A DNA stretch of 64,000 nucleotides, from contig OZ176051.1 in NCBI GenBank assembly GCA_964247055.1, positions 3,844,001 through 3,908,000 on the forward strand. The letters run 5' to 3'. This document shows positions 14,201 through 64,000 of this stretch, piece by piece. Each line of letters opens with the position of its first letter. The first letter of the stretch is position 1. The notes under the pieces were generated by a model. That model searched no databases and was not told the origin of the DNA. It saw nothing but the letters and a program-made list of their open reading frames with translations. The position numbers and the translations under genes were made by a program. This DNA is from Paragordius varius (Eukaryota > Animalia > Nematomorpha).

Positions 14201-15397
14201 TGAGCCCTTCTTCTTCTGATCTGTAAAAGATTGTTCCCATTGTTTTTGAATTTTATCACCCAATTGAGTACTTAAAGTGACTGCCCTTCGATTCGGTAAT
14301 TGATTGATAGGACAAGTAGTTGGAAGTTTTTGATTCCACTTAAAAAAATATCAAATGTCAAAAATGGTGTGTCAAAATATGTTGCATACTAAATTATAGT
14401 TAAAAAAATTAAACTCCAAAAAACAATGAATTAGACTTGAAAAAACGAAAATAATAAATTTTCTAGCGGATCTTTTAATTATCCGGGGAACAAAATAATT
14501 TTCAGATAGAATTATAAAATATATTTTTATAATACGACAATAAGCTAAAAATATTAGCCAAACAAAAATATCAATTTTTACAAAAGCGTTATTTATTAAA
14601 TAACTAAACAAAAAGTCTCATACTAACTCCAAAAACAATTTGAAGTGTAAAAAAATTTGCTTACTTTTAAATTTTTGCTTCCTTTATTATCTATGTTTTT
14701 CGTTTTTGATGTCGTATTGAGAGAGTTTGTGGTTAAAGTAGAAGACCTTACACAATCATTTGAACATGTACCGTCTTGTGCATTGTCAGAAAAGATACTT
14801 TCACCCATATAATCGGAATTTGTTATTAAAAGTTCCCATGCGACTGTATCCACAAAACATAGGAGCGGATTTCTTTGGATCCTAACTGCCCCCCGCTCAA
14901 TAATAGTCAAAGATCCTATCATTATGAATAAATTTCAAAAGATGTTATAAAAAAATATTTAAATTATAATTCAATCGTACCTAACCCAAGATCTTCCAAT
15001 TCAAAATTTTCATAAACGGCTAATGCATAATTATATGCTAAGGTTAATCCACGAATCACAGCTAAATTTGGAAATAAATCTCCCAAACTGGTTAATCCAC
15101 TAACTCTATACACCAATAAATAACCGGTTATTTCAACCAAATCTGGATAGGTGATATTAACAAAATCTTTTGGCTTAGCCAAATCAAATAACATAATTTC
15201 CAAATTTCCCTCGATAACTGTACATCGATCGAGTATTGCAAAGTTTGTAACAGAATTACGAATTGATAGGCTACTGCAAACTAAAAAATTATATTAAAGA
15301 GCATACTATAAGGGCTTTTGCGTATAATTTGAGTTGAATTAAAATCGACTAAATAGAATAATAAATTTGTTAAAATAAAAAATAGACATTTTATCAT
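1..15397 (-). CDS. InR: Insulin-like peptide receptor tyrosine kinase, about 30 exons, 3' end truncated by window edge
   Basis: Exons (minus, high to low): 15397-15307 (signal peptide [19 protein letters not shown]), 15280-14981, 14915-14665, 14338-14089, 13385-13222, 12893-12772, 12695-12475, 12165-12064, 11803-11656, 11578-11349, 10618-10424, 10103-9957, 9635-9498, ~9357-9007, 8594-8292, 7484-7157, 7062-6795, 6336-6049, 5603-5444, 5014-4858, 4439-4262, 3857-3602, 3172-3082, 2662-2521, 2321-2240, 2018-1848, 1404-1275, 1060-926, 608-406, 276-1. Motifs: L1 ([26 protein letters not shown]), Cys-rich region, L2 ([13 protein letters not shown]), FnIII, furin site RQKRR (~6930), [36 protein letters not shown]. 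Confidence 0.96.
3181..3212. repeat. (TA)n microsatellite near an InR acceptor
   Basis: Direct TA dinucleotide run. Confidence 0.9.
6425..6749. mobile_element. MITE family A copy 1 (InR intron)
   Basis: Inverted termini TATACCATTTACA... / ...GTAAATGGTATA with subterminal 21-bp tandem units (ttcacccttgaacaattcaaa). Confidence 0.85.
7933..8247. mobile_element. MITE family A copy 2 (InR intron)
   Basis: Same termini, 21-bp units and AT-rich core; followed by a (TA)n tract. Confidence 0.85.
8252..8290. repeat. (TA)n microsatellite abutting the InR donor at 8291
   Basis: Direct TA run; source of the YIYIYI ORF artefacts. Confidence 0.9.
10627..10976. mobile_element. MITE family A copy 3 (InR intron, core inverted relative to copy 2)
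   Basis: Same termini with four to five 21-bp units on the left; starts 6 nt from the AG acceptor at 10619-10620. Confidence 0.88.
13751..14064. mobile_element. MITE family A copy 4 (InR intron)
   Basis: TATACCATTTACAGTTCAAATTCACCC ... GGGTGAATTTGAACTGTAAATGGTA. Confidence 0.88.
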
Positions 15398-16590: not shown

Positions 16591-17370
16591 TAATCAATTT
16601 TTTATAATTAATACCTTATTAATACTCTAAAAATTTCAGATAAATATCAAACAGAAATTTTAAAATATAAAAAATATTCCACCTATAGATTATTAATTAG
16701 ATAAATGAAGATGTTTATTGTAAATTACATGTTTACAATAATTAGGTTCATAAATGTAATGCCAAAAAATATCCTTTGCGCGAACCTATTGACGTTGTTT
16801 TAAAAACTCCAAGGTATCATTTATTCAATGCATCTTCAGTATTAATAAGACCATATAAAAAATACTCATTAATATTATGTTAATGTGCATTGGTACTTAC
16901 ATAATTACATTTATGAAATGATTAAACACAACTCCATGATAAAAATGGCAACCATTGAACGAGGAATGTTTAATTTAAATATTATTAATTAAAATAAGTA
17001 TATAAATCTATTTTATATTAAGTCATGGTCGCTTTACGGACATTGCTATAATTAAAAATCAAAATAATTAATTATTTGTACTATTGGGATATACTTCATA
17101 CTAGGGGGATTTAATTGAAATATATTAAAACTCTATCTTTGATGAAACTTACATGGCCCTTTAATTGTAAATTAAATATTTTTATCAAATGTAATCATTC
17201 TGCCGCAAAATATTTTTTTAACTTAAATCTATTTAATTGATTTACCATTTTGATTAATATTGACTCATAAGATAATTTCACATCAAATATTCAGTTTTTT
17301 TAAATTTCATTTTTTCCAAGGATTTAAACTAATAAGAAGTAGACGATTTTTAAAAATCTTGTTCAAAAAT

Positions 17371-23607: not shown

Positions 23608-25301
23608 ATGAAAGATTTCTATTATGCAGTTGCCTACTGTATATTCATATCTATATTATATGTCAGCGGTTTATATCTAAGTCCTAATAAATATGCTAGG
23701 TATTTTATACCATAATTTGTCAGAGATGATACCAATGTTATTTTATGGCGTTTTTTATTTGTGTCCATAACATGCATAATAGCAGTTTTAATACCCTATT
23801 TTGTGAACAAAAATGTCGTATATTGCTTGAATGTTAAGAAGGATTGTCTTTTCTCCGCATTTTTTCTTCCATTTATACATGTTTTGGTGAGCAAATTTTA
23901 TTTATATATAAAATACAATCTGGGGCCAACAAAGTTCTATTGCAACCTCCCCGCGGTGTTGGCTGGGGCATGAAAATACTCTAACGGCAAAGACCATTTT
24001 CTAAACATGCGCAAAATTATTTGTGCATAAGGGCATGTGTTACGTAAAAAATTGCCTCAGATTACCACAAATATTATGAATATGAGTTACTGCGTGTACG
24101 AAAACTCCGAATTCGGAGTCCTACCCTTTATGATGATAAATATACAATCCCATACTAAACACCCATAAATTTGTTTTACGATCTGCTTTATAAAAATCGC
24201 TTTCGGAACACACTTAGGCTGATAATTTGTTATTATTCCAATAGGTTTAAACTTTTAAAGTAATATATAAACCAAAATAACTAATCTTTTAGAAAAAATT
24301 ATTATACACAGATTTCGCAGAGGCTATCGCAATTATATATAATTTGGTAAAATGCATTTTGAAATTTTACGCTATAATGCAATTTGAATTATTTATGACA
24401 TTTATTATGATATATAAATTAACAATAAATTTGAATTAAAATAAGCCTATTATTTAATAAGAGGATATTTTATAATTGTAATATAAAAATTATTTGGGCA
24501 AAATTTACTTAATTTAATATAATAAACGGTTGGTTAGAATTTGCAATATTTTTCTTTTGGCTTATTGTTTTTTATTGCCGTATTTTATATAATTCAATAA
24601 ACCTCTTAGATTTTGTTTGCCGCTCCCATCTTTCAACATATAGTTGACAATGAAATTTCCTCACGATCCAATAAAATAATATTTATCAGAAATTATGTAG
24701 TGGTAAATATTTTTATTTTCATATTAGGTAGGCTCCTTTCACCGAAGAATTTATATTTAGATGTTGTATGTTATCACTTTTAACGCGTTATTCTAGTGTT
24801 TTAACATCAATACTCATATCATCATTTCTTTTTGGCTTGGGTATATATATATTTAATGTGTATATAATGTTAGCTCATTTACATCACATATTTGAGAATG
24901 TGTATCAAGGAATAAATTTGTCCCACGCCTTATTCGTATCAAGTTTAATGTTAATAAAACGTTTTTTATTAGTCATACAATTTTCGTACACTACAGTGTT
25001 TGGATTGTATGTTTCAACTGTGTACATCATAACAGGTACCAAATTTTTTTGAAATAATTTTTTATCAAATATTTAAGAAATCTTATTTTTTAATGACGCA
25101 GATCATTTAATTTCATGTTTTACCATTCATGCATTTTGCAATACAATTGGTTTTCCCGATTTTCAACGCATATGGAAACACCCAAACTCACTTTATCGCT
25201 TAATTATGCGGGCCCTTTTAATATTTGGCTTGTTGGGTTGGCTCGTCACATGGCCATACGTTATGAATCCTACTATATATGCCAACAAAAATACAATATA
25301 A
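23608..25301 (+). CDS. RCE1: CAAX prenyl protease 2 (Rce1 / type II CAAX endopeptidase)
   Basis: Exons 23608-23699, 23724-23886, 24610-24702, 24732-24840, 24874-24942, 24973-25035, 25102-25301. Motifs RNYVVAPFTEEFIFRCCM, FGLAHLHH, QFSYTTVFG, HAFCNTIGFP. Confidence 0.92.
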
Positions 25302-30179: not shown

Positions 30180-30518
30180 ATGCCTCGTCGTTTATATGAA
30201 TGTGAATATTGTAACAGGGAATTTCGATACGATCGCGGCGCAATTAAATCCCACAATAAAAGCAAAACACATTTATACCATAAAAAATTATATTATGATT
30301 CAATACCTACTCCTACTGTACCACATAATAAAAACATTATTGTTTTATATCCCCAAAAAATTCGACAACTCCAATTGATCAATCAATTTAACATATCTAA
30401 TTGGGTGAAAAATTGGCAAATAAAAAAAGAAGACGCTAAAATATTCAAAGATTACCATCATGATATAACACATGAAAAATACAGATTTATTAAGAATTAT
30501 ATAAATAAATTATTTTGA
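30180..30518 (+). CDS. Small matrin/U1C-type C2H2 zinc-finger protein, ZMAT5 (U11/U12-20K)-like, 112 aa
   Basis: [42 protein letters not shown] fits CxxC-x12-H-x5-H, followed by KKxxYD as in ZMAT5/U1C. Single exon. Confidence 0.6.
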
Positions 30519-30945
30519 TTCTAATAAATCCTTTGCTTCATTTATTTTTGCAGCAATTAACGGTGAGCCACCTATTATTATTATATTTAAATTACCTTTA
30601 TCCGGGTGGTTTAACCTCATTATCCTGTTATAGGCTTCTTTTATTTTTAATGGGCTGGCGTTCGGGCTGAAGTAAAAAAATTAATAAAGTTACCTTACTC
30701 CTAAAATAAGAGCTGCTTCTCTCTTAGTCATTTTTGGCTCAAAACCTCCTTGGTAATATTTTGAAAAAACCTAGGTAAGAGGTAAATATACTTGAGATTG
30801 GGAAATATTTTTAAAATAGCTTTGAGCATGTTCAGCCAATGGCCTACTGTTTCGAGACAAATATCGGCCTAAAAATATTCAAAAATATACCAGCATAACC
30901 AATGATAGCTATACCCAATCCGGCCAAAATTGCAGCACTCGCCAT
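30510..30945 (-). CDS. DNAJC19: Mitochondrial import motor J-protein Tim14/Pam18
   Basis: Exons 30945-30891, 30868-30792, 30770-30694, 30666-30596, 30571-30510 give [25 protein letters not shown]...[65 protein letters not shown]. Absent from the ORF track because of the tiny introns. Confidence 0.95.
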
Positions 30946-45088: not shown

Positions 45089-47214
45089 TTAATACCATAG
45101 GACTTTTTAGCTTTTGGTCTGTACTTAGGAAATAGCTTATCGATTTCTGCCTGTTCCGTACTACTTAATTGATTAAAAGATACGGCTAGCTTGCTGTTTG
45201 TATCGCCGGCAATCCAATTAACATTATCACCATTTCTTTCATAAAATCTATGCCAGTAACATTATATATAGATATTAATTATGTCTTGAAAGCACCTTAT
45301 TTACACAAATGGTAAAATTTTGTTGTGCAACCGTCGCGAAAAAACGATGGCCATAAAATTATATATTAATTATTAACAAAGAAAAGTGCATCAACACATT
45401 AATGTAAATATTATTTGAATAATTTTTGGAAAAAGAAAAATTTACAAAAAGATTAATTATTCAGCCTACAAATTTTCAAGATATATAAAACATGTAAAAT
45501 AATGTCAAGATCCGTGTTTTTAATGCCTTCCATCCTCTGCACATCCATTTCATTTAATAAAAGCATTTAAAACAGTGACCACAACATTATTTAACATATG
45601 GCAATACTTATCGTCTGCTTCATTGGTAGTTTTATTGATAGTCATGTGACAGGTTATGGTATCATTATTCTGACCATTTTCGTGAGCGGTGTTTTGAAGA
45701 GTTGATTGATCAAAATCGATATTATTTAACAATATCATATCCGCATCCATGTTATTATTTGAATCAATCACCTTAGTTGAACTTATATTTATGAGTGAAC
45801 ATTCCTTATTGAAACCGTTAATTGTGGTGACATTTTCTGGTATAATCATTAAATTATTTTTACTACCGTTATTATCATTGTGACCATTATATAAAAGAGA
45901 TTCGGCATCATTCTTTTCTTGTGAACTACAAACAATCGTAGTGTTTGGAGGAATAGTAAAATTTGTATTCGGAATGTTTGATTGGGGTAAATGCACTGAA
46001 TATTGAGCAAAATTGGTGTCATATGGTGTTTGTGATAATCCGAAGCTATCAGCTCGAAACCCTTTGATTATGAGATTCATATCATTGTTATCCTTATTGT
46101 GCAAAGAAGCGTTTGCATCTATCTGGCCAAATTGTGAATGTCCCATAAAAGGTAGCGCTTGCGGAACTTGGTATAAAGATGCAAATTGATCCTTAAAAAA
46201 TTCGGCATCAAACACGGAGTTACCATTTGATTCTGTTGAATAGGATGGATACGAGGTTCCAAAACCATTTATACCGGTTACGATATTGGGGACAAAACCG
46301 TTTTGGTTATTAATATTGTTAGCGTAGAAAGGGGTGGCTATTGTGTTAATCGCGGGATTAAAGTAGGGAAACGCATTATAATTCACGATCCCTGATGATT
46401 CATTGGGTGTTGCGATGTTGTAATAATTGTAGGGTATGGTTAAATTAGAGTCTCGGAAGATATAACCATTCTCACAATTAGGGAGAATATTAGTTGTCTG
46501 ATTAGGGATGTGGGGTATTATAGGTAATACCGGCAATAAACGTCTTTTAACACAAAAACTACCGTTCTGAGTGACAATATTAGTAGTGTTTTGCGTTGAC
46601 TCGTGGCCATTGGGAGGAGTGGTTGGATAATTATTATTGACTATGGGATAATTTAAGATATTATGATGATGACCAGCACTAAAATTATGACTATCAATAA
46701 TGTGAGATGAATTATTATTATTATTGGTATAAAAACTGCTATAGTACCCCATATCTGTATTGGTAGAATGGCTCATTTGATTATTTATTTCATAATCATC
46801 CGGTTCATCATTACCACATGTAACGGATGTATCTATTTCCGGAAAATAATATTCAATCCCTGTCCCGACTGTCCCTTCATCGCATTCCTTTTCCCCATCG
46901 ATTTGTAATTTTCCGTGGTTTTCTAGAGTTTCATGATTAGATAATTTTGTTGGACATACGGTTTTTCCATTCTTAGCCGCTGTTTTGTTCGACGCTTTCA
47001 GCGTACTTTTACCATTTTTAATGGTACAATGCGAATTGTCATAACAGTTGCCATTATTATCATTGGGTATCTCATCAAATTGTTCAAGGGGAAAAAATTT
47101 AGGGGCAGGTGAGGAGGGAGACTTTATGGCATAATTTGCGACAATTTGTTCATTTTTCATACAATCATTGTCATTCTTATCGATAGAGTCAGGGAATGCG
47201 GTTGGAGGTGCCAT
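40281..47214 (-). CDS. APBA: Mint/X11/LIN-10 adaptor (PTB plus two PDZ domains)
   Basis: Exons 47214-45608, 44892-44588, 44491-44446, 44301-44135, 43929-43843, 43355-42975, 42489-42223, 41814-41602, 41052-40933, 40618-40478, 40352-40281. [80 protein letters not shown]-terminus [13 protein letters not shown]. Confidence 0.93.
41139..41402. mobile_element. hAT/Charlie-like MITE (family C) in a Mint intron
   Basis: Ends CAGGGGTGGCCAAC ... TTGACACCCCCTG, a typical hAT terminus; the 8-bp flanks TTTTAGAG / ATAAAGAG match only partly. Confidence 0.65.
41999..42035. repeat. (TA)n microsatellite in a Mint intron
   Basis: Direct TA run. Confidence 0.9.
45033..45082. repeat. (TA)n microsatellite in a Mint intron
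   Basis: About 25 TA units. Confidence 0.9.
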
Positions 47215-47584
47215 AAATTGTGAAATGGTAATTTTATCAAAATTTAAATTTTAATGTAACACAAAAATGAAACATCAATATGATGTAAAATAAATTATAT
47301 TTCCAAACTTTCATGAAAAAATCGAAGAAGTGAGAGACAAATTTGTCTTATGACTGGAGTAAATGAGGATAAAGTTTTCATCAATAAATGCAAAAAATAT
47401 AAATATTTTTGTAGGCCACACCAAAATAGCACCACGATATAAAGTACATTTTTTCTGTCCACATCTTCACTATTGCATGTATGTTGTAAAAAATATATGA
47501 GATAATTTAATATATGGTAAAACTGGGGACAATACAAAAAATAATCGATATTATCGTATAAATATAGGTTTATTAACAATTTGA

Positions 47585-47877: not shown

Positions 47878-50800
47878 ATGGAAGATAATTTTGGTCCAGA
47901 TAGTGAATTCATTCAAAAGGATTTTTATGTTGAAGTTAAGGATAATGATCATTGGTAATTTATATAATATATATTTGAGGTACCTTGCTAAAATTTTGGA
48001 TTTAAAAATTGATGAACGGAAAATACTAATTCATTTTCAAGGATGGAATAAAAAATATGATCAATGGGTTACCTATGAAAAAGATAAATTTCGTAATGCA
48101 AATTTTGAACATAAAAATCAAGTAATTAAATCTTAATATGTGCAGAAATTTTCCGTGAATGATATAGTTTTAGCAAAAAACCCAATGTATGGCTATATCC
48201 CAGCCAAAATCGTTGAGATTTTGTCCGATAATGGATCTTATGTTTTATCCTTTATCGACAAAACTACAAAAACTGATAAATTAACATCCATACGAAAAAT
48301 CACCCATAAAAAATTTAACTTAAAAGTAAAATACGTTAATCAATTTTTAGGACTATCTCGTTGATATTAAAGTTGAAGCACCTACTTTGCCCGATAAGAC
48401 ACCAATAAGTCTTGTGAACGCCATAGAATCTTATCAAAAAGATGATAATTTTGCAACATTGTATCCAAACACTGATTTTGTCTTTTTAGTACAACTTAAA
48501 AATATATTGAACCAAACCACAGTAAACGGTCGCCATGACAACGTAGTTTCCAATTTAAAAAGGCCTAATACTCCACTGGAATCTAATTCCCACACTATAC
48601 CTTATTCGAAAAAAGCAAGATCCGACAATGATTCTCCGAATTCTGGTTTGTTGGTTTATAATTTCATAACTAAAAAATTAACATAAAATATTTTTTGTGG
48701 TTTAATTAATATACAGAACGAAGTTTTTCCTCCCAATCATCGCAGCTATCCACAATTCTTAAGCAATCAACCAACTCTAATAAGGCACCAAATCAAACTA
48801 ATCCAGAAGGTAGTGTATACTAAATAACATGCTTTTAATTTAAGAATCGTTAAAATAAAGACTTTAAATATGGTATACAAATTTAATTGAGCTCCGATAG
48901 TTTGCATATCTTGTTTAGAATAAATTAAAATACATGTTAATAAAATATATTCTTTTTAACTTTAAATTTTTTAAAACGAATTTGGGTTAAAGTTTAAATT
49001 GTGATTATTCGAGATTCAGCGGCTATCTTTGTTGCATATTAACTTCCTAAATCATAAAAATACTGCGAAAAAAATGGTTTGCCAATTATGAATTTTATTA
49101 ATTATTTATTCAATTTTTACCAAAAATTAACTCTCTAAATCATTTATTTAACCAGAATTTAGCAATCATTTCATCTTTTACCATTATTTTTAATTTTAGA
49201 CATGACTGAATCAGGAAACCAACTCAAAAAACGAGTTAAAAAAGCTTCTACTAGACAAGGTTTTATTTTGGACTTTTTAATCTTATTAAAATTTCATAAA
49301 CATTGTAATTTAGCAATTATGAATTCGTATTTTTGTATATGATTTGTATTAGATCCCATTTTGGCTGCCATAGAACGCATGAAAGAACGTAAAAGGCTTA
49401 AATTGGCCCAAAGCTCACAAAATCAGGAGGAATCGGACAAAACTGTTATATCGATAATTCAAAATAATCCTAATCGTTTATCACCCTTGAAAGAAAAAAA
49501 TGTTAATCAAAAGATTGATGTTGAAAACTCAGTCAAGATTGACACTATCTCAAATACGTTATCTTCTTACAATACTAAAAATGAAAAAAACTCCTCTTCT
49601 CATGAACTTATTGAGAAACAAAGTCTTATTAACAGTGGTGAAGAATCGAAATGTAAAACTACCAATGATGATGTTACTAATATAACAGCCACTTCTTTAG
49701 AAACCGAAAGTAGTCTTACCATTATAAATTTGGATGAAAAAGGTCAAAATGAAAATCACACTGACCGTTCTAATCAAGAAAACCAAATGAATGACACTTG
49801 TGATAATACAACAAATATATCAATCGATATGGATAAAAGTCTACCTGATGATACCTCATACAAAACCCAAACAAATATTGTATTAGAAAATTTACAGGCT
49901 CAGACCCCTGAACCCGCTTCTCTTAATTTTCCCACGAAACGCATAACGAAAAAAGGGATTGCCATTTTAGACCCAAAAATTATGTCAAATACTGAACATA
50001 AGGACAGTGATATTCTGACCAATTATAGCGAAAATATTAGTGATAATAGCTATAATATTGATCTCAATTTTTCACCTAAAACACACAAAGGTGGTGGCAT
50101 TAAAATTTTACATCCAAAAATTTCAAGCGATTCTGCTAGCACAGGTAAAGTTGTTGAATCACAAAAGAAACCAATTACGGTACACCATGAACCAAAAAGT
50201 GTGAATGCCGCAAAACATAATCGTCCCAAAATTATGTTTAATAAACAAGCGTTTTTCCTAAAATCATCGTCGGCACATAGGGGAAAACGTCGAATATCCT
50301 CATCTGGTGATGAGCAAATCTCAAATAAAGAAAGTAATTTTTTTTGCAAAAATAATTTTAGTTTTGACTAACTTTGTTAGTATAAATTTTAATTTGTAAC
50401 AATAAAAAATTGCAGAAATGGAAATTTTAATATTTATTTATATCATTTTTAGAAGACCCTGTATCAGAAATCAAAACAACTGTGGATTTACCATCGCCAC
50501 AAGATTTACAAGAATCTCCAACGGTTTAATATAATTCTTAATATTTCATGCATTCCCAATGTCAGTAAAGTTTTAATGTCAATTTTACAATTTTTATAAA
50601 AATAATTTTACCCTTAGATTGCACCAGATTCTGTATTAGAGCAACCGAAACTTATTGAATCTTTAGCCGTTCATTTAGATATTCCTTCTACTGAAAATCA
50701 CTCACACAACATAATGAATGATTTTCATCAAAATTCAAATGTTTCACGCACAAATATTTTAAGTTCTCAAATTTCACCATTAAAAACAATTGATTTAGTT

Positions 50801-52698
50801 GAACCTTTGTTGAAATTTGAATCAAATAAACCCTTAACAATATCAAAGAAAAAAGCAAGTAGTAACACCCTCATAAAACATAATACTGTCGAATCAGAAA
50901 AGGTGCCATCTCGTCAATCTTCACTTTCCCCTTCAACGACCACGACTTCTAGCATAGATATTGTGCATTGCGCGTGTGGTATGCAAGAGGAAAATGGTCT
51001 TATGGTTCAGGTATTTTACAAAAAAAATTAAAATTTAACGTGAAAAACGTATAATTGAGTGTATTATCCATTAACATCTCTATTCCTTATATTGCAAGTT
51101 GAAACGATGAATTTTATTTGAAAAAAATCAAGGTTTAAATATGTATAGGTGTCCTTTGAAAAATATAATTGTCTTTTAGTTTTTCCATTTCGTCCGTAAA
51201 ATTTTGATTTTTACTGTAAGTTAAGTTTATCACATTTTAGTGAATCACACTTGAATCGAAGTTTTAAGAAATCAAAAATTTTTTTTTCATTATAGTGTCA
51301 CAAGTATTGTTTTTCGATTTGCCAATAATATTTCTCGTTAGAAGGTGTCTAAGGTTATATAGATTGGTATTATAAATTGGGTCAAATAATTTATACAACC
51401 TTATAAATGTAATTATATTTAAATTGTTATACATTATTTAGTGTGATATGTGTTTTGCGTGGCAACATTCATATTGCTTGAATTTGCCGAAAGATTCACA
51501 CGGAAAAGAAAAAATTCCAACATATCATATTTGCTATTTTTGTCGAAATCCACCAGGTATTTTGAGTTTTTTTTCAAAAAATATTTCTTAAACGCAGTGT
51601 ATAAATCGTTTTTTATCACATAAATAGATCCAACTCAGTTATTAGATGAATTTTTTGTCATGAATGATGTGCATAGAACCGGAAAATTTCCCATGACTGG
51701 AAAACCTCTGAAAAAAGGTTAAATTTTTGGATATTTATATTTTTCAAACCCAACTTTTTACATTGTACAATTATTAGTTAATAAGACAGACCATATGAAT
51801 GTAGCCAATGTAGACAAAAATAATCAAAAAAATACAGTAAATGATGCTAATTCCATTTCACAACAACAGAACAACTTATACCAAAAATCTGTTGCGATTG
51901 AAAGGGAAGTCTTAAATCTAGATGCAACTTTATACAATCTTCGGATCAAATTACATCAAGCTAATAATAAAGATTGCCTCACTACATCACCAAATAAGTA
52001 TTAAATTATCAAAATTTCATATTAAAAGCTGTTTTGTAAATTATTCCAAGACAATAAATGTAGCTGCTGATATAATTTTTTGGGGTAATTTTTTACATCG
52101 GTTTAAAATGATTAAGATAAAAATGTTAATTAAAATCAATTTGACCGAACAAACAATCGAGCTGAAATTCTTTTATTCTAAAATCATTACACAAAAAATT
52201 GTCTTATAACCATAGTAAAAGTTCTGATTTACATCCCAGTTATTTTATGAATATTTATCCATACATTTATATTAATTTTATTAGATCTTTCCAGAATGGT
52301 CAAAATATTTCCGAAAATCAGAAAATTGTATGTTTTTAACATGTTTCTATTTGCTATTGGCCTTTGACCTTTATTTTTTAAATGTAAAAATTTTATATTT
52401 AGGATGGTGGTTCCCTTAATTTTGATATACTCAATTCTTTTGAACTACAACAAATTGAACTTGACAATCATTTAAAGGAAGTAGAATCGAAATATCTAGG
52501 TATTTATCGCTTTTATAACTTCGCTTATTAAGAATATCATATCATAATTTTATAATTAATACTTCTTTTTTCGATAACCATAATTTATATATATATATAA
52601 ATTATTTGTTTAAAATTATACCATGAATGATTTATGTTATTTATATTTTGTTAGATCTTGAAAAACAATTTTTAAGCAGTGAAATTCCATTACAATAG
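47878..52698 (+). CDS. PHF20: PHF20/MBD-R2-like chromatin reader (two Tudor domains, PHD finger)
   Basis: Exons start 47878-47954, 47980-48121, 48146-48325, 48351-48645, 48717-48809, 49200-49259, 49353-50333, 50453-50523, 50618-51010, 51442-51556, then five to six short exons to a stop at 52698. Tudor 1 WYLAKI...LIHFQGWNKKYDQW, Tudor 2 [38 protein letters not shown]...CYFC. Confidence 0.85.
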
Positions 52699-53110
52699 CA
52701 CAACAACAGCCAACTATAAATCAATTTAAACCGTGTTTTTTGGACTTAAATTGGCAAAATAATTATTGTAATATTTTGTAAAAAAATAAATTTTTCATAT
52801 ATTGTTTTTTCAATATATCTATGAAGTTTACTTTTATTCTCCTGTTCTTAGTTAGCTTAAAAAAGGTAAATTTGAATTTTAACATTATTTGAAATGTAAA
52901 GAATTACAAAATATTTTAAAAATATAAGGATTAAATGCGTATGATAAACCCCGATTATATAAAATTTGATAAATAGCTTAATATTTAGAGTGTCCATAGA
53001 AATTATATATAATAATATCGAATAGGTTTTAATGCACATAAGAAGTTTAATTTTGCTTAGCCTGCCATTTCAAATTAAAGGTTATATTACTTTTTCTATT
53101 TGATATAAAG

Positions 53111-53762
53111 ATGGCGTTTCTTAAACTATGTTCTTATAAAATTTATATTTTAGCGTATAATGTAAATTTTTGGTTAGGGAACATAATAGCTAACTAAGTT
53201 CTGATAGTTTAGGGATTTTTAATTTTTTGACAGTTTATATTTTATAACGTTGCGCTTATGGCTTTGCCAATCTCTTTTTAAGCCCTCATAATGAGCCAAA
53301 AACAATAAAAAATTAGTTTTTGAACAATATTTGATATTTATAAAGAATTTCAGATATAAATTTTTATACCTCATTGACGGCTTAATTGTATACGAAATCC
53401 TAATTCCACATTATTATTTATAATATTAAAATAATTTCGATTAACTTAAACATTGATAATGTTAGATATTAATTTTAATAAAAATTTCTTTTCAAAAATA
53501 CTCTCATTGGAATCATCAGATAAATTGCAATATTGAAAAATCACCAGAATCCAATTTTAGTGTTAAAGTTATTGAAATTGAACCACTTAAATGCGATGGT
53601 GCAACTTATAAAGGACCTCAGCCTTGTAAGCCATGTCCAAATTCCTACCAAATGTGTACGCGGAGAATTAAGAGCGTCTATTGTAAAGTGAATGCATGTG
53701 ATATAGATGTGTGTCTTCCTATTTTAACTGATGCCAATAATACTTTAGTTATTTGCAAATGA
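53111..53762 (+). CDS. Putative small secreted cysteine-rich protein (~115 aa)
   Basis: Stop-free 297-nt exon 53466-53762 in a GC-richer island with 9 Cys (CDGATYKGPQPCKPCPNSYQMCTRRIKSVYCKVNACDIDVCLPIL). Candidate first exon 53111-53161 (MAFLKLCSYKIYILAYN|GTAAAT) joins in phase 0 to give a hydrophobic leader. Confidence 0.5.
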
Positions 53763-53929
53763 ATATTGACAGACAGACAAAATTAATATGTGTAAAAAAT
53801 TTATTGTACAATGAATCAATCACAAATTATATATTATCATGTGTGTAGTATATCTGCATGCTATGAACTAATTATTTATCTTTTTGGATATATATTTACT
53901 ATAAAATAAAATGTTGGCAATCAATATTG

Positions 53930-56900
53930 TTACGGTTTTTCGCCCAATTTTAATTTGAGAACGTTTTCAAAGTTTTCATCGTTATAATTACATCCCTTCA
54001 ACCAAAAATCACTGGAAGGACTACGGATCATTTTAGCTTTCTAAAATTATAAAAAAAATATTTAGCTATTTTTATAATTTAATTAAATTGGGTAAAAAAT
54101 TCTATGCAAAACATACCTCTCTGAAGGTCCCCGGTTCTTTCCAGAAGTAGTATAAGCCTCCAATTACAATTTGTGCCAATATCGCTATAGTCAAAGTCCA
54201 ACCAAAACTGTGCGCCCAGCCCGGATATTTATAATTATCGAGTTTGTGTTCATCTTGCGTTACCAAATCATACAGCGATGTAATGGTCAATGTCTAGAAA
54301 TAAATATTTACAAATACAATATCATATTAAATTACCTATCGTGTTTTGTAAAATGAATTTTAAGTTTTTTTAAGAAAAATGATGCGTTAAAACGTTGAAG
54401 CTTTAGCCATTTTAAAATCAATTAAAATATTTACAATTAATAAGAGAGGTCCAAACACGACCCACCCACATAACCAATATAGTTTGTGGGGCAGAGTGCG
54501 TCCCAACATCATTTCAATGTCTTTAACAAAACGTTTGAATCCATAAATCCACATAATGCCGACAACTTCGGCCGCCGCAATGAAAATGAGGTTGAAATCG
54601 CCAACATAATAGTTTATGAGATCAAAAACGTAAAATCCACCCTATGGCGAAAATGAAAAAAGTAAAACTAAATTTTGCTCCACAACAAAATAAATACAAT
54701 AGAAGCTTAACTTACATAAGTGACAAACGGTAGCCCTAACAAAAAGCATAGGAAACATATCCCAGCAGACATGTACGTTTTATACTTCCAAGGGAATATG
54801 GTTGGAAATTGGTCATGTATTGCACTTGTTATAGTTTGAATTAGAGCTATTTCGCTGTCCAGCCCCAGGATGTATAACATGAGGAAAAATAGGACTGACC
54901 ACAATTGAGGTAGCGGGAGCCGCGATAAAGCCCTCGGGTATACAATGAAAACAAGGCCGGGACCTAAATATGATTGAAAGCGTAAAATCTTCATTTTAAG
55001 AAGTACTAACAAACCAACACCTCAAATTCATCTTTGAACTAATTATGTTCTGAATATCCCAAATTACCTATATTTTTAAAATACTTTACAAATAATATAA
55101 TCTTTTTAAAATATATATAATATATGATTTAGCTCAAAAAAACATAATTTATTTTTAGGAACTATTAATGTTCAGGGAAGAATTTTTAATGTTCAAAGGG
55201 TAAATTTGAGGCATAAGTGTAATCTATTTGTATTACCAGATATGGTTTGAGAACCATCCGTGAGATCAAGGTCAAGTTCGTAAGCCATATTTCCAAGATA
55301 GGAAAAAATAACTATCCCGGCTATCAGGCTTGTTACCGTATCCATAATGCTAACGATAACGGCATCTTTGTAACAATTATTACGGAAAGGATTAAAACTG
55401 GCAAATGTTGTAATTCCTCCGAGTGCTAAACTTAAGGAGAAAAACATTTGGGAACAAGCAGCTTTCCACACCTAATCAGAAAAATAGTGAGTTAAATTCA
55501 TTGTGTAAACAAACATTGAAGCATTTTTATAGACAGTAAAAACAAAAAATGATTAGTGAAAATTAAAAAACTGAACTTGCTTAGATAACCAAGAATGAAA
55601 GGCTTGTAAATTTTGTATAATAAATTATTCCTTTTTGTTTTTACTGTTAGTTTATATATATAATTACCTTAATTTCCAGTAATTTATCCCATTGCGGAGT
55701 AAAGAGATATTTTAGGCCAGCTCCGGAACCTTTGAGTGTTACTCCACGAATTAAAAGTATGATAAGTAGGAGGTATGGTAACGTGGCTGTTACATATATA
55801 GCCTATTAAAAAAATAAAAAAAAAATAAAAACGTAATTATTTAGATAAAATATTTAAGATATTTGCCAAAATACATATGGAAAAAATATTTTTTATATAC
55901 TTTTCCGGCAGTTTGAATGCCCTTGTAAAGCATACCGAAAACAATAAGCCATGAAAGAAAAAGGATAAGAGCCAAGTCCCATTTTAATGGCCCAATATCG
56001 TCTATACCTTTGGAGCGGTTAAATCCCAAAACACGATTACTATAAAAGAATATATGATATATTGAAATTATATCATTTTTTAGTTATTTTAAAAATCTAA
56101 GCATTTTTACATCCAAAATTCCTCCATAGATGATACATTACGTTTGATTACGGCTAAATCATTCCCAATTGTGTGATTAAAATTTGGAACATACGGGGTA
56201 GTTAAATTTGGTTGCATAGAGGATTGGTAATTTAAATCGGTATAGTTAAACATAGAGGTATTGGATAGCGATTGTAGAGTAAAATTTAGGTGATTCAATA
56301 AGTTTGCTCCATCATTTGAGCTAGTATTCAAAGATGTGATCATCGAAGAGTTACTGAGCGTTTTTGTAGTATTTAAAATAGTGTTTGTGTCATAGCAAAA
56401 TTTGGTATTAAAATTCTATGAATATAAATACAGTAAAAATTTGAATTAAACGACGCAACATAAAAGTATGAGGTTTATATTTTTTGTTAAGATGACCACA
56501 TTTTTTAATCCGTGATTTACATATAACTCAATATATTACAATATGTATTCGAGTGTGTTACCATATATTTTAATACTTATTTCTCAAATACTAAGCTTTG
56601 ATAAATATATACAAAAAATATTAGTCTTTAAGTTTGTAAGTTTTGCTTTATATTACTATAAATGGACATCAGAAAAAATAGAAAATATATATAAACTAGA
56701 TTAAACTTCTCAAAAATTAATTTTTATCTTCGAAAAAAAGGGCAAATTTTACATTGTTGCAATGTGCCCAAGGTAGGTGACGTTGAAATGAGGCAAATGT
56801 ATAGTACAGCGTATATGCCATAAGTATATTGTAATAAACACATATAATAAGGCAGGTGAATAGCATTGCATATCCAATACCTTTATTACAAAATACAAAA

Positions 56901-57878
56901 AATATTAATAGAAATAAAAACTTTTTTTTACAAAAAATGTTTTTTAGATAACGCTTATTGACAACACCCTTGTTTTTATCGTTAATTTGCAGTATCATTT
57001 GCGTAATTAATTAATAACCTATTATAATTTATTGGCAGGCTATTAAAAGGATTGATTTGATTTAACAACATTTATATTGGCCGATTTGGCACTCTTACAA
57101 TTGAAATATTTTATATCAATTACTTGTTATAATATACTTAATATACAAATTTTTAATCTATTTATATCCGAAAAAATTTAAACGCTATTTAGAGTCAAAT
57201 ATTTTTTGCATATTAATTAATGAATATAAAACAAGTTGTAAAACCATTTAAATTTAAAAGATGGCTTTTCGGAAAATATATAATTAAATTTATTTATATT
57301 TGGTTACCCATAGTAATTGGAGCAATTTTAAAAGCACCGGGTGGTCCTCGCCTTGTAAATTGACCCAACGATAGTTCCATAAAATAAAGCGGTTTCCCAA
57401 TCACAAACAGTATAATGAAATAGGGTATTAAGAAAGCCCCTAAAATTTATTTAAAAGACAAACATTATTACATGTAAAGGCAATTATATACCTAAAAAAG
57501 ATGTTACATAATTATATAAAATTCCTTTCAAAAAATTGATAATATAGCTGGTAAAATAAAATTAGGTATAAACCTCCGCCATTATCAAAGCAAACATAAG
57601 GGAATCTCCAAATGTTACCGAAACCTACTGAAAATCCTATGATGGATAAAACGAATTCAATGTGGTTTCCCCATTCACCCCGATGGTTTTGATCAGCAAC
57701 ACCTTCGATCTTGACTTCTAAATCATTTTTTTCGGGCTAAACAATGGTTTTTAGAATAATTATTTATGAATAATTATTGAAAATTATGAAAAAATTTACA
57801 GAATTTAGTTCTTTTATGGGTATTCCTGGTTTTTCGTTGTTTTGTTTCATCGTAAATTGGATTGGACCAATAGTTCAT
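53930..57878 (-). CDS. SLC6 sodium:neurotransmitter symporter (amino-acid/glycine-proline transporter-like), about 12 exons
   Basis: [109 protein letters not shown] at 57878, stop at 53930. Confidence 0.92.
55020..55210. mobile_element. MITE family A degenerate copy (SLC6 intron)
   Basis: ctcaaattcatctttgaac ... ttcaaagggtaaatttgag with core fragments; outer termini lost. Confidence 0.55.
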
Positions 57879-59479
57879 AAAGTCAAATTTTGAGCACTTT
57901 GAAATTTCTGGTACGGAGTGGGATAATTGGAATGGAATGAATCAAAGTTTATGTTAATTAATCAAAATATAAATTATATTATTGCCTTAATTTTAATTTT
58001 TTATGTTAGCAAAAAAAAGATTTATAAAAAATTATTTTTAGATAAAAAATATGAAAAATAGGTTGTGTATTTATGATTTAAAAGAATGTCAACTCGACTG
58101 TATACTTGTTATATTTTGGACGAAGATATATATAAATACCTTTGTTTTTATTATTAATAAAGCCTAGGTAACAACACTTTTTAATAGTCCATACATTATG
58201 AAAATAAAAAATAGATAATTTGTATGATGCAAGAATTTTGATGAGTTTTTTTTATAAATAGCATTTTTTGAAAAAATAAGATATATAAACTTTAAATTCA
58301 TATAAAAATATATTAATTAACATGTTCACTCCAAAACTTAAAATAGTTTTAAATTTATATTTTTGATTATCAAATATTATTTTCAAGTTTATGGACATCA
58401 GACAATGGTTAATCATGAAATATATTTAACATTTTTTGATGAATATTTTACCAAGGTTAAACATAAAAGAATAATTTAGTTTGCTAAAAAATTTTTTTAG
58501 GTATGATATAAAAATTAATATAAAATAATAAAATTACCGTATTTGAATTTCTCTAGCTATCACACTTTTTATACCTCCGTAAAATAAAATAATTTTTAGA
58601 CTCTAAGAAAAAAAATGATTTTGTAGCAATTGATTGGTTTTATCAATTTTTCAAAAAATTATTTTATAAAATGTTATAATTAATTCGCTAAACGATAACA
58701 TTTATGATGGACTATTGCATCATTAATATTGATAAATGGCTTCGGGCATCATTTTCCCCAAAAATATGGTTTTAATCGTTCACCATTAATTTATTAAATT
58801 TATATTTTTAAAAAAGATATACCTTAAGGGTTTCTCCTACATAAATGATAAGATAATATTAATTATACTTACAATATACATATTTTCTTAATATATTTAA
58901 TTATCTTATTTTTACGTGAAAAATTAAATTTTACAAAAAAAAATAGCTTAGAAAATTATTTGGAATTGAATTTTTAGACAGTTCGTATGTTTAATAAATA
59001 TGTTCCTGACTTTACCCACAATTTCCATAGGCAAAATTTGTATATAAAACCATTTTTTGAATGAAAACCAAAAACTTTGCAAATTAAAAACTTTTTGTTA
59101 ATATATTATTACAAAAGAATGAATATTATTGCGACAAAATAAAGTATATATTTCACGGGTAAATATGTGGATATAACACATTGAAAATGCCTGGCAATAA
59201 TAGTACGATACGTTATTATATCATAAATAGTAATAAAAAAATTTAAATATTAATTTTATAAATTAGTGGTAACTTATAAATGTGAAATATTTGATAGCCA
59301 ATTTTATTTAACAGGTGGTTTCCTGTTTGGTTTTTCAGTGACCGTGTTTTTTACATGAATTAATTTATTTGAAACCAATCAATTATAAGATTCACAACAT
59401 ATAAATATTTATTTGTCACGTATAAGAATGAATTATTTGCATAACATGTAATTTATAAATAGTTATGATATTATAAATA

Positions 59480-62400
59480 TTAGTGGCATAAATCATTTTT
59501 TTATTTCCTCCATTTTGATTTGTATGGTTTTTTCAATGGCTGTCATGTAATCTTCTATACTACAATTTTGTTTCTGAAAAATATGATAAAATTAATTTTA
59601 TAAAGTGTTGGATACTTTTTACCTATTTTTGACAACTTTAAAATGATTCAGTTAAATAATTTTTTGGGTAAAAAATACTTTAATAAAAAGGGCATGGGCT
59701 AAAAATGGAATTTTTCTGATAACGCGACCACTTAAACCACTGGCCGTTTTACAAATATCGAATAAGCGTAAACTGTGACGTGTAGAAGATTGATTTTCAA
59801 ATTGCATTATTTTCAGGCATTTCAAGTCCACTAATGTTAATTTGGGCCTGATTATACCAACCTATACAGAATATTTGATACAGATATATACCATTTACAG
59901 CTCAAATTCACCCTAAACTAAATTATGTATTTTTTAAGATTTAAAATTACCTTTATTTTATAATATGAAATTCTGTTTAAACTTAATGTAGTGCTGAAAA
60001 AACAATAAACTATGTCGTAAAAATATATTTCATATTAATGATGAGTTATATTATCCCGAAAATACATAATTTATTAGGGTGATGAATTGTTCAAGGGTAA
60101 ATTTGAATTGTAAATGGTATATCAATATATTAATGTAGGATTTAAAGATATTAATAGAAAAACATATTTTTTTATTTTGTACCTTCATTAATTCTATTAA
60201 ACTGCATCGTATCATATGGAATATGACTTCATGATCTGGTAAATCAATGTAGAGTTTTAGATCTGCCCTATCTAAGAAAGCGGAGTCTAATGCCTCAAAC
60301 AAATTAGATGTTGTTAATATCATGACATTTGGAAAACTAAATTATAATTTTTTTTACAAAAATATATAAAAAAATAAGCATTTGACAAGGTAATCAATCA
60401 ACTTTTAATACTATTAAATAGTTTTCTCAAATAATTTGGAATGTAAATTAATTTATTTATTAAGCAAATGACATATAATGAATGATAGAATGAATATTAA
60501 AGCCACCTAATTAACTTAAAATGAAAATTAAATTTTGAAATCTAATTCTGTAAAATTATTATTATAAAACAAAAATTTATTAACTTTTTAATTTTATCCA
60601 TTTGTGTAAGTAAAGCGTTAACGACACGCAATGCATCACTCGGTTCAGAAGCGGTTGATATATTCCGTGAACCAGCAATACTTTCTACCTATGAAACAAT
60701 ATTTAAATTGGCTTAAATGAATAATTTATCAAAGAAAAAGTATAATATAATATTAACTGTTTTCTTCAAATTAAATATTTTTACGAATTAAATTTTAAAC
60801 CTCAGAAAAATAAGAAATTTTGGAAAATTTACTAGATTGGGATAAAGGTTTGAAATTTAGGTCGAACTCCATATTAAATTAAAAAACAACGGAAAACTGA
60901 AAAAATTGTGCCGATTAGGGTTAGATCTGACCGGTTAAGAATGTATTCATCATCGTGAGTGTGTCTGATGACTATTATCGATACTCCAAAACTTTCAAAC
61001 AATCGTTTATCACGCAAACATATTTAATGTAAAAATATTGTTAGTTTAGAATTTGTTTATAATGTAATCTTTTAAATACTAACTATTTAGCACGGTTAAC
61101 ATTGTGTTTGGTTAATTTGTTTTTAATAAATAATAAGTACATATGACCATGAATGACTGTATTTATTAGCGGTCGGATCGGTTTTTTGTGAGAGCCATTA
61201 AATACAAAACCCTAGATAATCGTTAAATTTTTTGACATTATATATCGAGCTATGAGACCTATGATATTCATATAAACTTTGACTTATGAAAGAAATTAAA
61301 ATATTTATTCTTATAGTTTGATTGATACTTAGTTTATGATCCCATAGTAATATAAAGACCACTTAAAATGATAAAAACATCTCTGGACCTATGTAAATTC
61401 GATTACAACGTTATCCAAAAATTAGATGACGTTTAAACCGATTCCGGATTTTTTCATCCATGTTTTCCGTTAATATTTTATTTAAAGGAAAGATTTTGTT
61501 CGGGTTTCTGTTCCGTGTTCGGAAATAAATGGTTTCGATAGTATTAAATTACAATATGATAAAAGATTTTTTGAGACGGTTCTCAAAACAAGCTGATGAT
61601 ATGGCATAAAAAGGGTTTAAATAAAGTCCCTAAACTTCTTAGTACCATTTGTTATTCATTAATTAAGGGTAAAAATAAGCTAAACCTCATCAATTAAAAC
61701 GAAAATTAATGTATTCTCATCTGCAGCTACATCTTGAATTTTTTGGAATATTCTTTGCACCATTTTTCCACTCTGTTATAAATTAAAAAATAATATATAT
61801 ACCTCGGAAAACCATTTTGAAAACAAACAATGGCTATTTATTTCAAACAAGAAACCCCAATTGTAACAATCAATCATTCTAATCATAATTTTTTGGGCCA
61901 ATGATTTACATAAAGACGTTTTTCCGGTACCCGGTGGACCTTATATTTTAATAAAACAACAAACCGTGCAAGAGAATAACTTTATTCCAGCTTATTTGCG
62001 TTGTATCAACATGATGTGTGGCAAAAAGCATAGCACTATATGCATAATCTAGCAACTAATGATACAATAATGAAAAAATTTACATCATCCTTGACATAGG
62101 TTTTAAACAACAAAGTTTCCCAGGTTCTGTGAAACTTCAAGTTGGGTAAATTATAACTTTTAAGTGCAAAAATATTGTCACTTTCACTCGTCGGTTGATT
62201 CATGTCCTCATTTATTTCATCCAAATTAGATCCATCAACGAACAGGCTATAGAGATGGAATTGGACTTCATTATTTTGTAGATCTAAAAACTATTTTATT
62301 TATTTTTAAGCAATTTTACTGCCCCTTCTCCCCCATTCGGTTTATCAATGTTTACTGATATTATCTTATTTTGCAAATAATCATCATTAAATTGTTCAAA

Positions 62401-62590
62401 CTTTAAATTACTTTCCACATAAAGCATCGAAAATGATTTCAAAAATTCAGTTAGTTTGTCCTTTATACGACCGTAATCAACATCGCTACATAAAATAAAT
62501 TTATATAATTTACCAATCAGATAATTGAACCTCGATATGAAATGTATTTTTAGATAAATTAGACCGTTGACTAGAAGTAATTATATTCAT
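59480..62590 (-). CDS. TRIP13: Pachytene checkpoint AAA+ ATPase TRIP13/Pch2
   Basis: Exons 62590-62514, 62485-62320, 62290-62084, 62055-61965, 61939-61803, 61772-61686, 60688-60585, 60336-60183, 59861-59679, 59573-59480. [84 protein letters not shown]. Confidence 0.95.
59887..60121. mobile_element. MITE family A copy 7 (TRIP13 intron)
   Basis: TATACCATTTACAGCTCAAATTCACCC ... GGGTAAATTTGAATTGTAAATGGTATA. Confidence 0.82.
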
Positions 62591-62649
62591 GTCAATAAAA
62601 TTTACTAATCGTCTGCTTATTTATTTATTAGAAAAATGTATGTATAAAA

Positions 62650-64000
62650 TTATGAATCACATAAGGTTGTCCCAGAAACAAGTTTTTGAATCTGCTTTGG
62701 TCTTATATCGTATGTTGAAAGGACACGAGCCGAAGGATCCACCAACTTGATTCGTTCATTTTCTGGAAACCAATCTAACCGTGGCATCCAATTTTTGGTT
62801 ACTAATGGCGGATGATTAGGAAATAATTCATCATATATTTTTCTATAATAGTATGCTTCTTTAGTCAATGGACGTGGTGGTGCCAGTTTTGGAACTTTCT
62901 CCTCAAACTCGGAATCTGAAATTAAGGTGTTAATTTTTGCTATTAATTTATCCCTGAATTCATAGTTGACACCATCCGAAAACGCCTCCTTTTTTCGCCA
63001 TAAAACTTCACGAGGTAAATAATCCCCCTTTTCAAACGCTTTGCGCAATATATGTTTCTCCATTCGGTCATTGACACCGTGCATTTTCATGTTTGCAGGG
63101 ATACGAAAGAGCACATATGGAAAAAGTTTTTTATCCAAGAATGGTTCTCTCATTTCCAAACCAAAGTATGCTAGAGTTCTATCTGAGCGTAGCGCATCGA
63201 ATTGATATAAGTTTTGGCAAAGATCGATAACCTCTTCAGAGAATTCGTTTGGTGAAGGTGCTCGCTTTAAATAACTGTATGAGCCAAATGTTTCTTCCGC
63301 TCCCTCACCAGACATAAGAACTTTGACATCGGTGCGATCCCTGATATATTTCGCCATTATAAATTGGCCAATACTGGCACGCACTGTAGTACAATCCCAA
63401 CTTCCAAGAGCCCAAATAACCTCCCGAATAGATTTAAACGCTTCATCAAAAGTAAATTCAATACGGTGATGCTTTGTTCCCAGCTTATCAGCCACCATTT
63501 GAGCATATTCAAGGTCTGGTGAATACGAGGTACCTTGTTCCGATCTCATACCCACTGAAAATGTGTGTAGTGTACTTAAATGAGGTTGCTTAGCACAGTT
63601 ACACACATGTTGAGTTTGTGAGTTTACATTGAATATATTTCCGTTTGGTGAAGTGACATCATGATCATCGGCATCGTCGTTATCGTATGATTTGTGAAAT
63701 TTATCTATTTCATGTTTATGGGTAGGAGAATAAGACATTCGCCTTCCTTGATTTTCAGCTGATTCCTGCTGCATGTCTCCATTGGCCATTTTGAGATCAG
63801 TTGGTGACGACTCTAGGTGTCCATTATGGTCGAGTCGTTTTCGTTTGTTAAATAAACACTGTGTGGAATGATAGGTAGTTGCTTTAGCCCCAGAATAATA
63901 TCTACTCACTATACTTGCAATAAGGCTAGAATCTAACCCACCAGATAAAAGACATCCAATCGGTCTATCACTTATCAATCTTTTTTTGACTGATTGGATA
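62650..64000 (-). CDS. ASNS: Glutamine-hydrolysing asparagine synthetase, synthase domain; 5' end beyond window
   Basis: VKKRLISDRPIGCLLSGGLDSSL, TTVRASIG, SGEGAEE, REPFLD, EKHILRKAF, WRKKEAFSDG, DPSARVL. The frame stays open to the window edge. Confidence 0.95.
   Translation of the reverse strand, partial: IQSVKKRLISDRPIGCLLSGGLDSSLIASIVSRYYSGAKATTYHSTQCLFNKRKRLDHNGHLESSPTDLKMANGDMQQESAENQGRRMSYSPTHKHEIDKFHKSYDNDDADDHDVTSPNGNIFNVNSQTQHVCNCAKQPHLSTLHTFSVGMRSEQGTSYSPDLEYAQMVADKLGTKHHRIEFTFDEAFKSIREVIWALGSWDCTTVRASIGQFIMAKYIRDRTDVKVLMSGEGAEETFGSYSYLKRAPSPNEFSEEVIDLCQNLYQFDALRSDRTLAYFGLEMREPFLDKKLFPYVLFRIPANMKMHGVNDRMEKHILRKAFEKGDYLPREVLWRKKEAFSDGVNYEFRDKLIAKINTLISDSEFEEKVPKLAPPRPLTKEAYYYRKIYDELFPNHPPLVTKNWMPRLDWFPENERIKLVDPSARVLSTYDIRPKQIQKLVSGTTLCDS

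Follow-up and report, generated by a model that had tools for sequence, protein, structure and literature searches.

The stretch of the Paragordius varius (Nematomorpha) genome analysed here is a 64-kb window of contig OZ176051.1 with a guanine-plus-cytosine (GC) content of approximately 27%, taken from an assembly of 110.6 Mb in 44 contigs. It carries TRIP13, a PHF20-like gene, InR, RCE1, DNAJC19, SLC6, Mint and ASNS. Several of these genes contain introns of only 21-33 nucleotides (nt), referred to below as micro-introns, and the order in which micro-introns and longer introns follow each other along a gene is the subject of this analysis. Single-exon Pfam matches confirm the identities of TRIP13, PHF20, RCE1 and SLC6, and joined coding sequences were translated locally for frame only. 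The coordinates of the features are collected in Table 1.

The TRIP13/PCH2 gene illustrates the arrangement. With exon ends fixed by script, its introns all have GT-AG termini and measure, from the start codon onward, 28, 29, 28, 25, 30, 997, 248, 321 and 105 nt. The switch from micro-introns to long introns falls between coding nt 678 and 765. The two hallmarks of TRIP13/PCH2 AAA+ ATPases, an AAA core with a Walker A motif and a TRIP13-type C-terminal lid, are both present, with single-exon Pfam matches of exon 5 to AAA (PF00004) and of exon 9 to AAA_lid_TRIP13_C (PF23242; E=1.5e-12). A query with exon 5 retrieved 741 homologues, the representatives of which are not hairworm proteins. Full-length TRIP13 homologues align contiguously over the splice junctions, and their residue numbering is unbroken across micro-intron 4. 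The length of micro-intron 5 is a multiple of three, but it contains an in-frame stop codon and appears as an insert of 10 codons relative to the homologues.

Differences between individuals bear on whether these short segments are removed. Four DNA runs, whose contigs are all collinear with the genome, were compared over positions 57001-63000. Two of them (X4 and X5) represent an individual that is approximately 2% diverged from the assembly. Among the 21 listed differences in TRIP13 exons, 16 are synonymous and five are non-synonymous in the spliced frame, and every one of exons 1-5 has third-codon-position changes. This periodicity requires removal of the 28-, 29-, 28- and 25-nt segments because the reading frame shifts across them. 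None of the listed insertions or deletions is exonic. They lie at 61946 (a 1-nt deletion in micro-intron 4, which also carries three substitutions), at 62072 (in micro-intron 3) and at 62616 and 62631 in the spacer between ASNS and TRIP13. To judge from these patterns, the TRIP13 micro-introns appear to evolve as non-coding sequence between coding exons, and the polymorphism between individuals supports their splicing. Near-identical pieces of the same interval are also present at low depth in a run labelled as a different organism, organism B (X3). They could stem from a wrong label, from sampling of a host or gut, or from a species very close to this one.

Two other genes in the window begin in the same way. 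Introns of the PHF20-like gene, which has single-exon Pfam matches to Tudor-knot/MBT-like and PHD_5 domains, measure 25, 24, 25, 71, 390, 93, 119, 94, 431, 71 and 60 nt. InR opens with a single micro-intron, and a rough exon-chaining run yielded no further InR intron shorter than 41 nt. This ab initio procedure, which combined codon log-odds with splice matrices trained on the window, strongly over- or under-predicted exons and was retained as a rough guide for InR only. Its poor performance is explained by the weakness of splice signals at 27% GC. The InR start lies about 150 nt behind a same-strand open reading frame of 349 codons (15547-16593) that has no Pfam match.

These models can be compared with the intron series of the original prediction, which held that micro-introns lie near the start codon and long introns downstream. 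The TRIP13 list is matched exactly by the rebuilt 428-codon frame. The nine lengths given for PHF20 are reproduced, with the unlisted introns of 71 and 60 nt coming after them, and the proposed opening of InR, 26, 65 and 326 nt, was recovered for these first three introns only. Two types of counter-case had also been named. RCE1 was said to carry micro-introns after a long one, and indeed three micro-introns are located downstream of its 723-nt intron 2. SLC6 was said to lack micro-introns, and its first two introns, of 63 and 134 nt, agree.

Five genes of the window together contain 17 micro-introns of 21-33 nt. None lies past coding nt 678, and the median for the 16 with a modelled position is 262. 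The four genes modelled in full also have 14 longer introns, for which the median coding position is 946 (Mann-Whitney test against the micro-introns, p=2e-5). Permuting the order of introns within genes gives p=1.5e-5, or 1.2e-4 when InR is left out. These window tests are post hoc, as the window had been flagged for this pattern.

A survey of the 110-Mb genome provides an independent sample. A coordinates-only profile search was used to find exon-by-exon matches to nine Pfam families (Cpn60_TCP1, Proteasome, Actin, Ras, HSP70, Aldedh, tRNA-synt_1, Kinesin and Pkinase). To obtain the implied intron length, which carries an error of a few codons, three times the profile gap was subtracted from the genomic gap. 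In 117 gene loci with at least two exon matches, 206 introns could be placed with a precision of a few codons. Position in the profile stands in only approximately for distance from the start codon, the search overlooks exons that are very short, and only the best candidates were scored.

Resolved introns fall into separate length classes: 19 are micro-introns (19-31 nt), none measures 36-45 nt, 31 measure 45-100 nt with a peak at 60-80 nt, and 156 are longer. All 19 micro-introns are located at profile position 135 or before, and none of the 91 introns beyond position 150 belongs to this class (Fisher p=9.3e-6). With the Ras family removed, micro-introns account for five of 33 introns at positions up to 100 versus none of 99 beyond (p=7.7e-4). 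The original prediction would have failed had introns under 36 nt been spread evenly along genes. Such an even spread is not what the survey found, and the claimed polarity is borne out both in the window and across the genome. The original interpretation as a whole, which also proposed that splicing of tiny introns may depend on cap or promoter proximity or on slow early elongation, or that promoter-proximal DNA is protected from insertions, is partly supported.

The pattern is broader than its first wording, since the 45-100-nt class is biased toward 5' ends as well. Introns of 100 nt or less make up 31 of 68 at profile positions up to 100 versus 19 of 138 beyond (odds ratio 5.2, p=1.5e-6), and the 45-100-nt class is concentrated at first positions, with 12 short-to-long steps versus five long-to-short. 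In 36 genes, the first resolved intron has a median of 76.5 nt, and the introns after it one of 438 nt (Wilcoxon p=0.027). Steps in size class between adjacent introns go up in 17 cases and down in seven (p=0.064). For example, one HSP70 gene goes from an intron of 67 nt to twelve that measure 295-698 nt; a kinesin gene has introns of 22 and 53 nt followed by 1237, 260, 274 and 303 nt; and a CCT gene has one of 26 nt followed by 607 nt and more. The positional layout is thus confirmed and holds genome-wide. Three size classes exist, of approximately 19-33 nt, approximately 45-100 nt, and hundreds to thousands of nucleotides, and their use depends on position. The micro class is limited to the first 0.45-0.7 kb or so of coding sequence, beyond which almost all introns are long.

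This layout is a tendency with exceptions rather than a law. Proteasome genes and several CCT, Ras-family and kinase genes carry long introns early. Micro-introns follow a long intron in RCE1, identified by the Rce1-like Pfam match of its exon 4 (E=4.5e-8), and in two Ras-family genes. Some genes have micro-introns throughout, such as DNAJC19, which has four and no other introns, and other genes have none. SLC6, whose exon 2 matches positions 1-36 of the SNF profile (E=1.1e-14), is of the latter type at its 5' end. Mint opens with an open frame of about 1.7 kb (45553-47250) and has no intron early in its coding sequence.

The micro class has sequence features expected of spliceosomal GT-AG introns, namely GT and AG ends and a removal that restores one open homologous frame. 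Retention of nearly any of these introns would yield a stop codon within 15 codons, and this includes most of those whose length is a multiple of three. Such lengths are not depleted among the window micro-introns (8 of 17). Splice signals in the window are weak, with little beyond GT[AT] at one end and [TA]AG at the other. A GTA start is present in 15 of the 17 window micro-introns versus about eight of 15 longer introns. Many micro-introns have a TTAAT-like motif 10-14 nt upstream of the 3' AG, so that the likely branch point would be only about 10-15 nt away from the 5' splice site.

Table 1. Genes, introns and spacer of the P. varius window, in window coordinates
Feature	Position	Strand	Description
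InR intron 1	15281..15306	minus	26 nt, coding nt 91; gene ATG at 15397
InR intron 2	14916-14980	minus	65 nt
InR intron 3	14339-14664	minus	326 nt
RCE1	23608..25301	plus	clean 262-codon frame
RCE1 intron 1	23700-23723	plus	24 nt
RCE1 intron 2	23887-24609	plus	723 nt
RCE1 intron 3	24703-24731	plus	29 nt
RCE1 intron 4	24841-24873	plus	33 nt
RCE1 intron 5	24943-24972	plus	30 nt
RCE1 intron 6	25036-25101	plus	66 nt
DNAJC19	30510..30945	minus	four introns, all micro, no others
DNAJC19 intron 1	30869-30890	minus	22 nt
DNAJC19 intron 2	30771-30791	minus	21 nt
DNAJC19 intron 3	30667-30693	minus	27 nt
DNAJC19 intron 4	30572-30595	minus	24 nt
PHF20-like coding region	47878..52004	plus	ATG at 47878; 12 exons as modelled, open 907-codon frame; may extend further 3'
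PHF20 micro-intron 1	47955..47979	plus	25 nt, coding nt 77
PHF20 micro-intron 2	48122..48145	plus	24 nt, coding nt 219; in-frame stop if retained
PHF20 micro-intron 3	48326..48350	plus	25 nt, coding nt 399
SLC6 5' end	57294..57850	minus	no micro-intron
SLC6 intron 1	57737-57799	minus	63 nt
SLC6 intron 2	57440-57573	minus	134 nt
TRIP13/PCH2 coding region	59493..62590	minus	ATG at 62590; 10 exons, 428 codons, single open frame once spliced
TRIP13 micro-intron 1	62486..62513	minus	28 nt, coding nt 77; GT-AG, frame kept on removal, immediate stop if retained
TRIP13 micro-intron 2	62291..62319	minus	29 nt, coding nt 243
TRIP13 micro-intron 3	62056..62083	minus	28 nt, coding nt 450; 1-nt insertion at 62072 in another individual
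TRIP13 micro-intron 4	61940..61964	minus	25 nt, coding nt 541; interrupts Walker A motif
TRIP13 micro-intron 5	61773..61802	minus	30 nt, coding nt 678; last micro-intron of the gene
TRIP13 intron 6	60689..61685	minus	997 nt; first long intron of the gene
TRIP13 intron 8	59862..60182	minus	321 nt; contains very high-copy MITE-like repeats
ASNS-TRIP13 spacer	62591..62649	minus	59 nt, ASNS stop codon to TRIP13 start codon; contains AATAAA

Two of the long introns contain dispersed repeats. Within RCE1 intron 2, positions 23896-24145 belong to a repeat of approximately 240 nt, of which the genome holds at least 169 candidate copies that are 76-85% identical. TRIP13 intron 8 carries sequences resembling miniature inverted-repeat transposable elements (MITEs), with signature matches at 59888 and 60109 and a contig depth above 2e5 at 59801-60200. 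The MITE-like element, recognized by a shared 12-nt signature, occurs 11 times in the window (6426, 7934, 10627, 10964, 13752, 14053, 27451, 27810, 38967, 59888 and 60109), and its summed depth in DNA contigs is about 1000 times the single-copy level. Those matches that can be placed in modelled genes are all at least 1.3 kb downstream of the respective start codon.

TRIP13 is separated from the upstream ASNS gene, which has the same orientation, by a very short spacer. Such close same-strand spacing, here and at InR, may hint at operons or at trans-splicing; the 59 nt ahead of TRIP13 also leave no ordinary promoter space. In Gordionus, TRIP13 does not adjoin ASNS, and no paper linking spliced leaders with Nematomorpha was found.

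ASNS itself (62653-63999) is 61% identical to its counterpart in Gordionus sp. m RMFG-2023, which is the only animal sequence among the top 120 matches. The next best matches are bacterial AsnB-type enzymes at 43-46% identity. These values point to a nematomorph-like animal that is not closely related to Gordionus. The Gordionus gene has introns of approximately 721, 99, 196, 670 and 760 nt. In P. varius, the region homologous to residues 229-688 is a single exon of 449 codons, and thus at least three introns in the 3' half have been lost here or gained in Gordionus. Elsewhere in the assembly, 200 kb of one contig (C1:1000001-1200000) consist of satellite DNA without genes. From about 35 to 62 kb, this block is a near-pure A/T array of short units with a gap of 200 N, and from 62 kb to its end it is a 178-nt tandem repeat with approximately 88-89% identity between units. 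It looks like centromeric or heterochromatic DNA.

Introns of this size, and this ordering of sizes, have precedents. Dicyemids have uniformly tiny introns. The same is true of Paramecium, in which they measure about 25 nt (PMC2518113). The P. varius micro-introns resemble these in being apparently functional spliceosomal introns of approximately 25 nt. In Paramecium and dicyemids, however, all introns are tiny and position is irrelevant, whereas in P. varius tiny and kilobase introns share genes and the tiny ones are confined to 5' regions.

The general eukaryotic rule is that first introns are longer, with an exception among the operon genes of C. elegans (Bradnam and Korf 2008, PMC2518113). 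Set against this rule, the layout in P. varius is the opposite, as had been claimed when it was first described as a reversal of the usual long first introns. The C. elegans exception combines shorter first introns with tightly packed same-strand genes, and the position of TRIP13 just behind ASNS can be compared with it.

A closer likeness is found in the monogenean flatworm Gyrodactylus salaris. Its intron lengths are bimodal, with a mode at about 32 bp that dominates positions 1-2 and a longer mode from position 3, a bias for which no explanation was given (Hahn et al. 2014, PMC4040987). Both genomes have two short length modes and a long tail, with the shortest introns at the first positions. 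The features that characterize the neodermatan type in that report are all found in P. varius: the shortest mode is well below 40 nt, the second mode is below 100 nt with the majority of introns above 100 nt, and the shortest mode is at first positions. Unlike in G. salaris, the short mode here is 19-33 nt and the second is near 60-80 nt, up to five micro-introns follow in succession (in the window), and the lineage is Nematomorpha rather than Platyhelminthes. Intron lengths of tapeworms are bimodal as well (Tsai et al. 2013, cited in PMC4040987). For Schistosoma mansoni, the 2009 genome paper is reported to describe small 5' and large 3' introns. Both are parasitic worms with a discrete class of minimal introns, and their size classes differ from those described here. 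No paper on intron sizes in Nematomorpha was found, and the Gordionus genome paper does not contain the word 'intron'. The layout is already published for a parasitic flatworm, and what is reported here is a new lineage for it, not a new phenomenon.

The explanation favoured here, put forward tentatively, is that the cause acts on DNA length, such that a zone at the 5' end of genes is intolerant of intron expansion. Up to approximately 1 kb from the gene start, enlargement of introns through duplication or the insertion of repeats would be selected against or seldom fixed. Small deletions would then shrink introns to one of two minimal spliceable sizes, approximately 25 nt or approximately 65 nt, with lengths of 36-45 nt being avoided. 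Farther downstream, expansions would be tolerated and introns would drift to hundreds of bases. The 5' bias that extends to 45-100-nt introns argues for a general 5' length constraint rather than a rule specific to tiny introns. The repeats in TRIP13 intron 8 and RCE1 intron 2, two of three long introns tested, also lean toward an effect at the level of DNA.

Several observations weigh against this explanation. TRIP13 intron 6, the largest of that gene at 997 nt, occurs only once in the genome and shows neither repeat copies nor any sign of insertion. Most PHF20 introns are without repeats, in a within-window comparison that has too little power. One short family, Ras, supplies 14 of the 19 surveyed micro-introns. 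A long intron precedes five of the 36 micro-introns, of which three belong to RCE1 and two to Ras-family genes. Their distance from the start exceeds 1 kb along the DNA but stays below 540 nt in coding sequence; for these, an RNA coordinate fits better than DNA distance. Finally, TRIP13 starts 59 nt past ASNS, where there is no space for an ordinary upstream promoter.

The last two of these points fit better with a less likely but still substantial alternative, in which the competence of an intron for splicing is set by the RNA 5' end. Introns shorter than about 35 nt would be removable only near the cap, a trans-spliced leader or a polymerase in early elongation. Splicing would proceed from the 5' end, so that distance counts on partly spliced RNA, and elsewhere shrinkage would halt at about 45 nt or more. 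The limit in coding (spliced) distance has no exception, the highest values being 678 nt for the window and position 135 of the profile for the survey, whereas measured along DNA the five micro-introns just mentioned sit past a long intron. In TRIP13, moreover, the micro-intron zone begins at a start codon placed directly behind an upstream gene. This mechanism leaves the 5' enrichment of 45-100-nt introns unexplained. It also gives no reason why downstream introns should measure hundreds of bases rather than just above the limit, and neither a spliced leader nor a transcription start was seen.

There is some chance, slightly smaller again, that the extent of the micro-intron zone is measured not on DNA but on partly spliced RNA, where the cap, a spliced leader or the start codon would mark its origin. 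If true, this would explain the micro-introns behind long ones, the zone that opens 59 nt past the upstream gene, and the likeness to flatworms. It would also mean that introns too short for ordinary spliceosome assembly are spliced in a distinct, 5'-end-dependent way.

A gradient in the cost of intron retention is an improbable cause. Error-prone micro-introns would be tolerated only at the front of genes, where retention brings in a stop codon early and the resulting transcript is quickly degraded and does no harm, whereas 3' retention would yield truncated proteins. The stop codons that nearly all micro-introns would introduce within 15 codons agree with this idea. It does not account for the long downstream introns, though, and it is weakened by the undepleted multiple-of-three lengths and by DNAJC19, which has a micro-intron just 60 nt ahead of its stop codon.

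More doubtful still is an effect of gene class, in which short or highly expressed genes would have micro-introns throughout and long genes would have long introns. Genes of the first type do exist: DNAJC19 is one, and in several Ras-family genes two or three micro-introns are the only introns. The predominance of the short Ras family among surveyed micro-introns points in the same direction. The switch nevertheless takes place inside genes: TRIP13 has five micro-introns followed by four long introns, PHF20 has three followed by eight longer ones, and InR has its micro-intron first. The switch is also seen in kinesin, HSP70 and CCT genes, where a first intron of the micro or short class gives way to long ones. 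Chance, or a gene-model artefact in a small hand-picked sample, is very unlikely: the window examples were picked after the pattern had been noticed and their splice signals are weak, but this reading is largely refuted by the independent survey (p~1e-5), by the polymorphism pattern and homologue alignments that confirm the TRIP13 junctions, and by the tight 19-31-nt length cluster next to an empty 36-45-nt bin.

In P. varius, a near-universal rule that the first intron is the longest is reversed, and introns of 20-33 nt coexist with kilobase introns in the same genes. The presence of both regimes inside single genes provides a natural test bed for the minimal size of animal introns and for its dependence on transcript position. 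There are also practical consequences. Standard gene finders and read aligners assume a minimum intron of 30-40 nt or more and will therefore fragment many genes of this genome at the 5' end, and hairworm genomes may as a result seem to have lost more genes than they have. Convergence is suggested by the parallel with parasitic flatworms and is open to comparative study.

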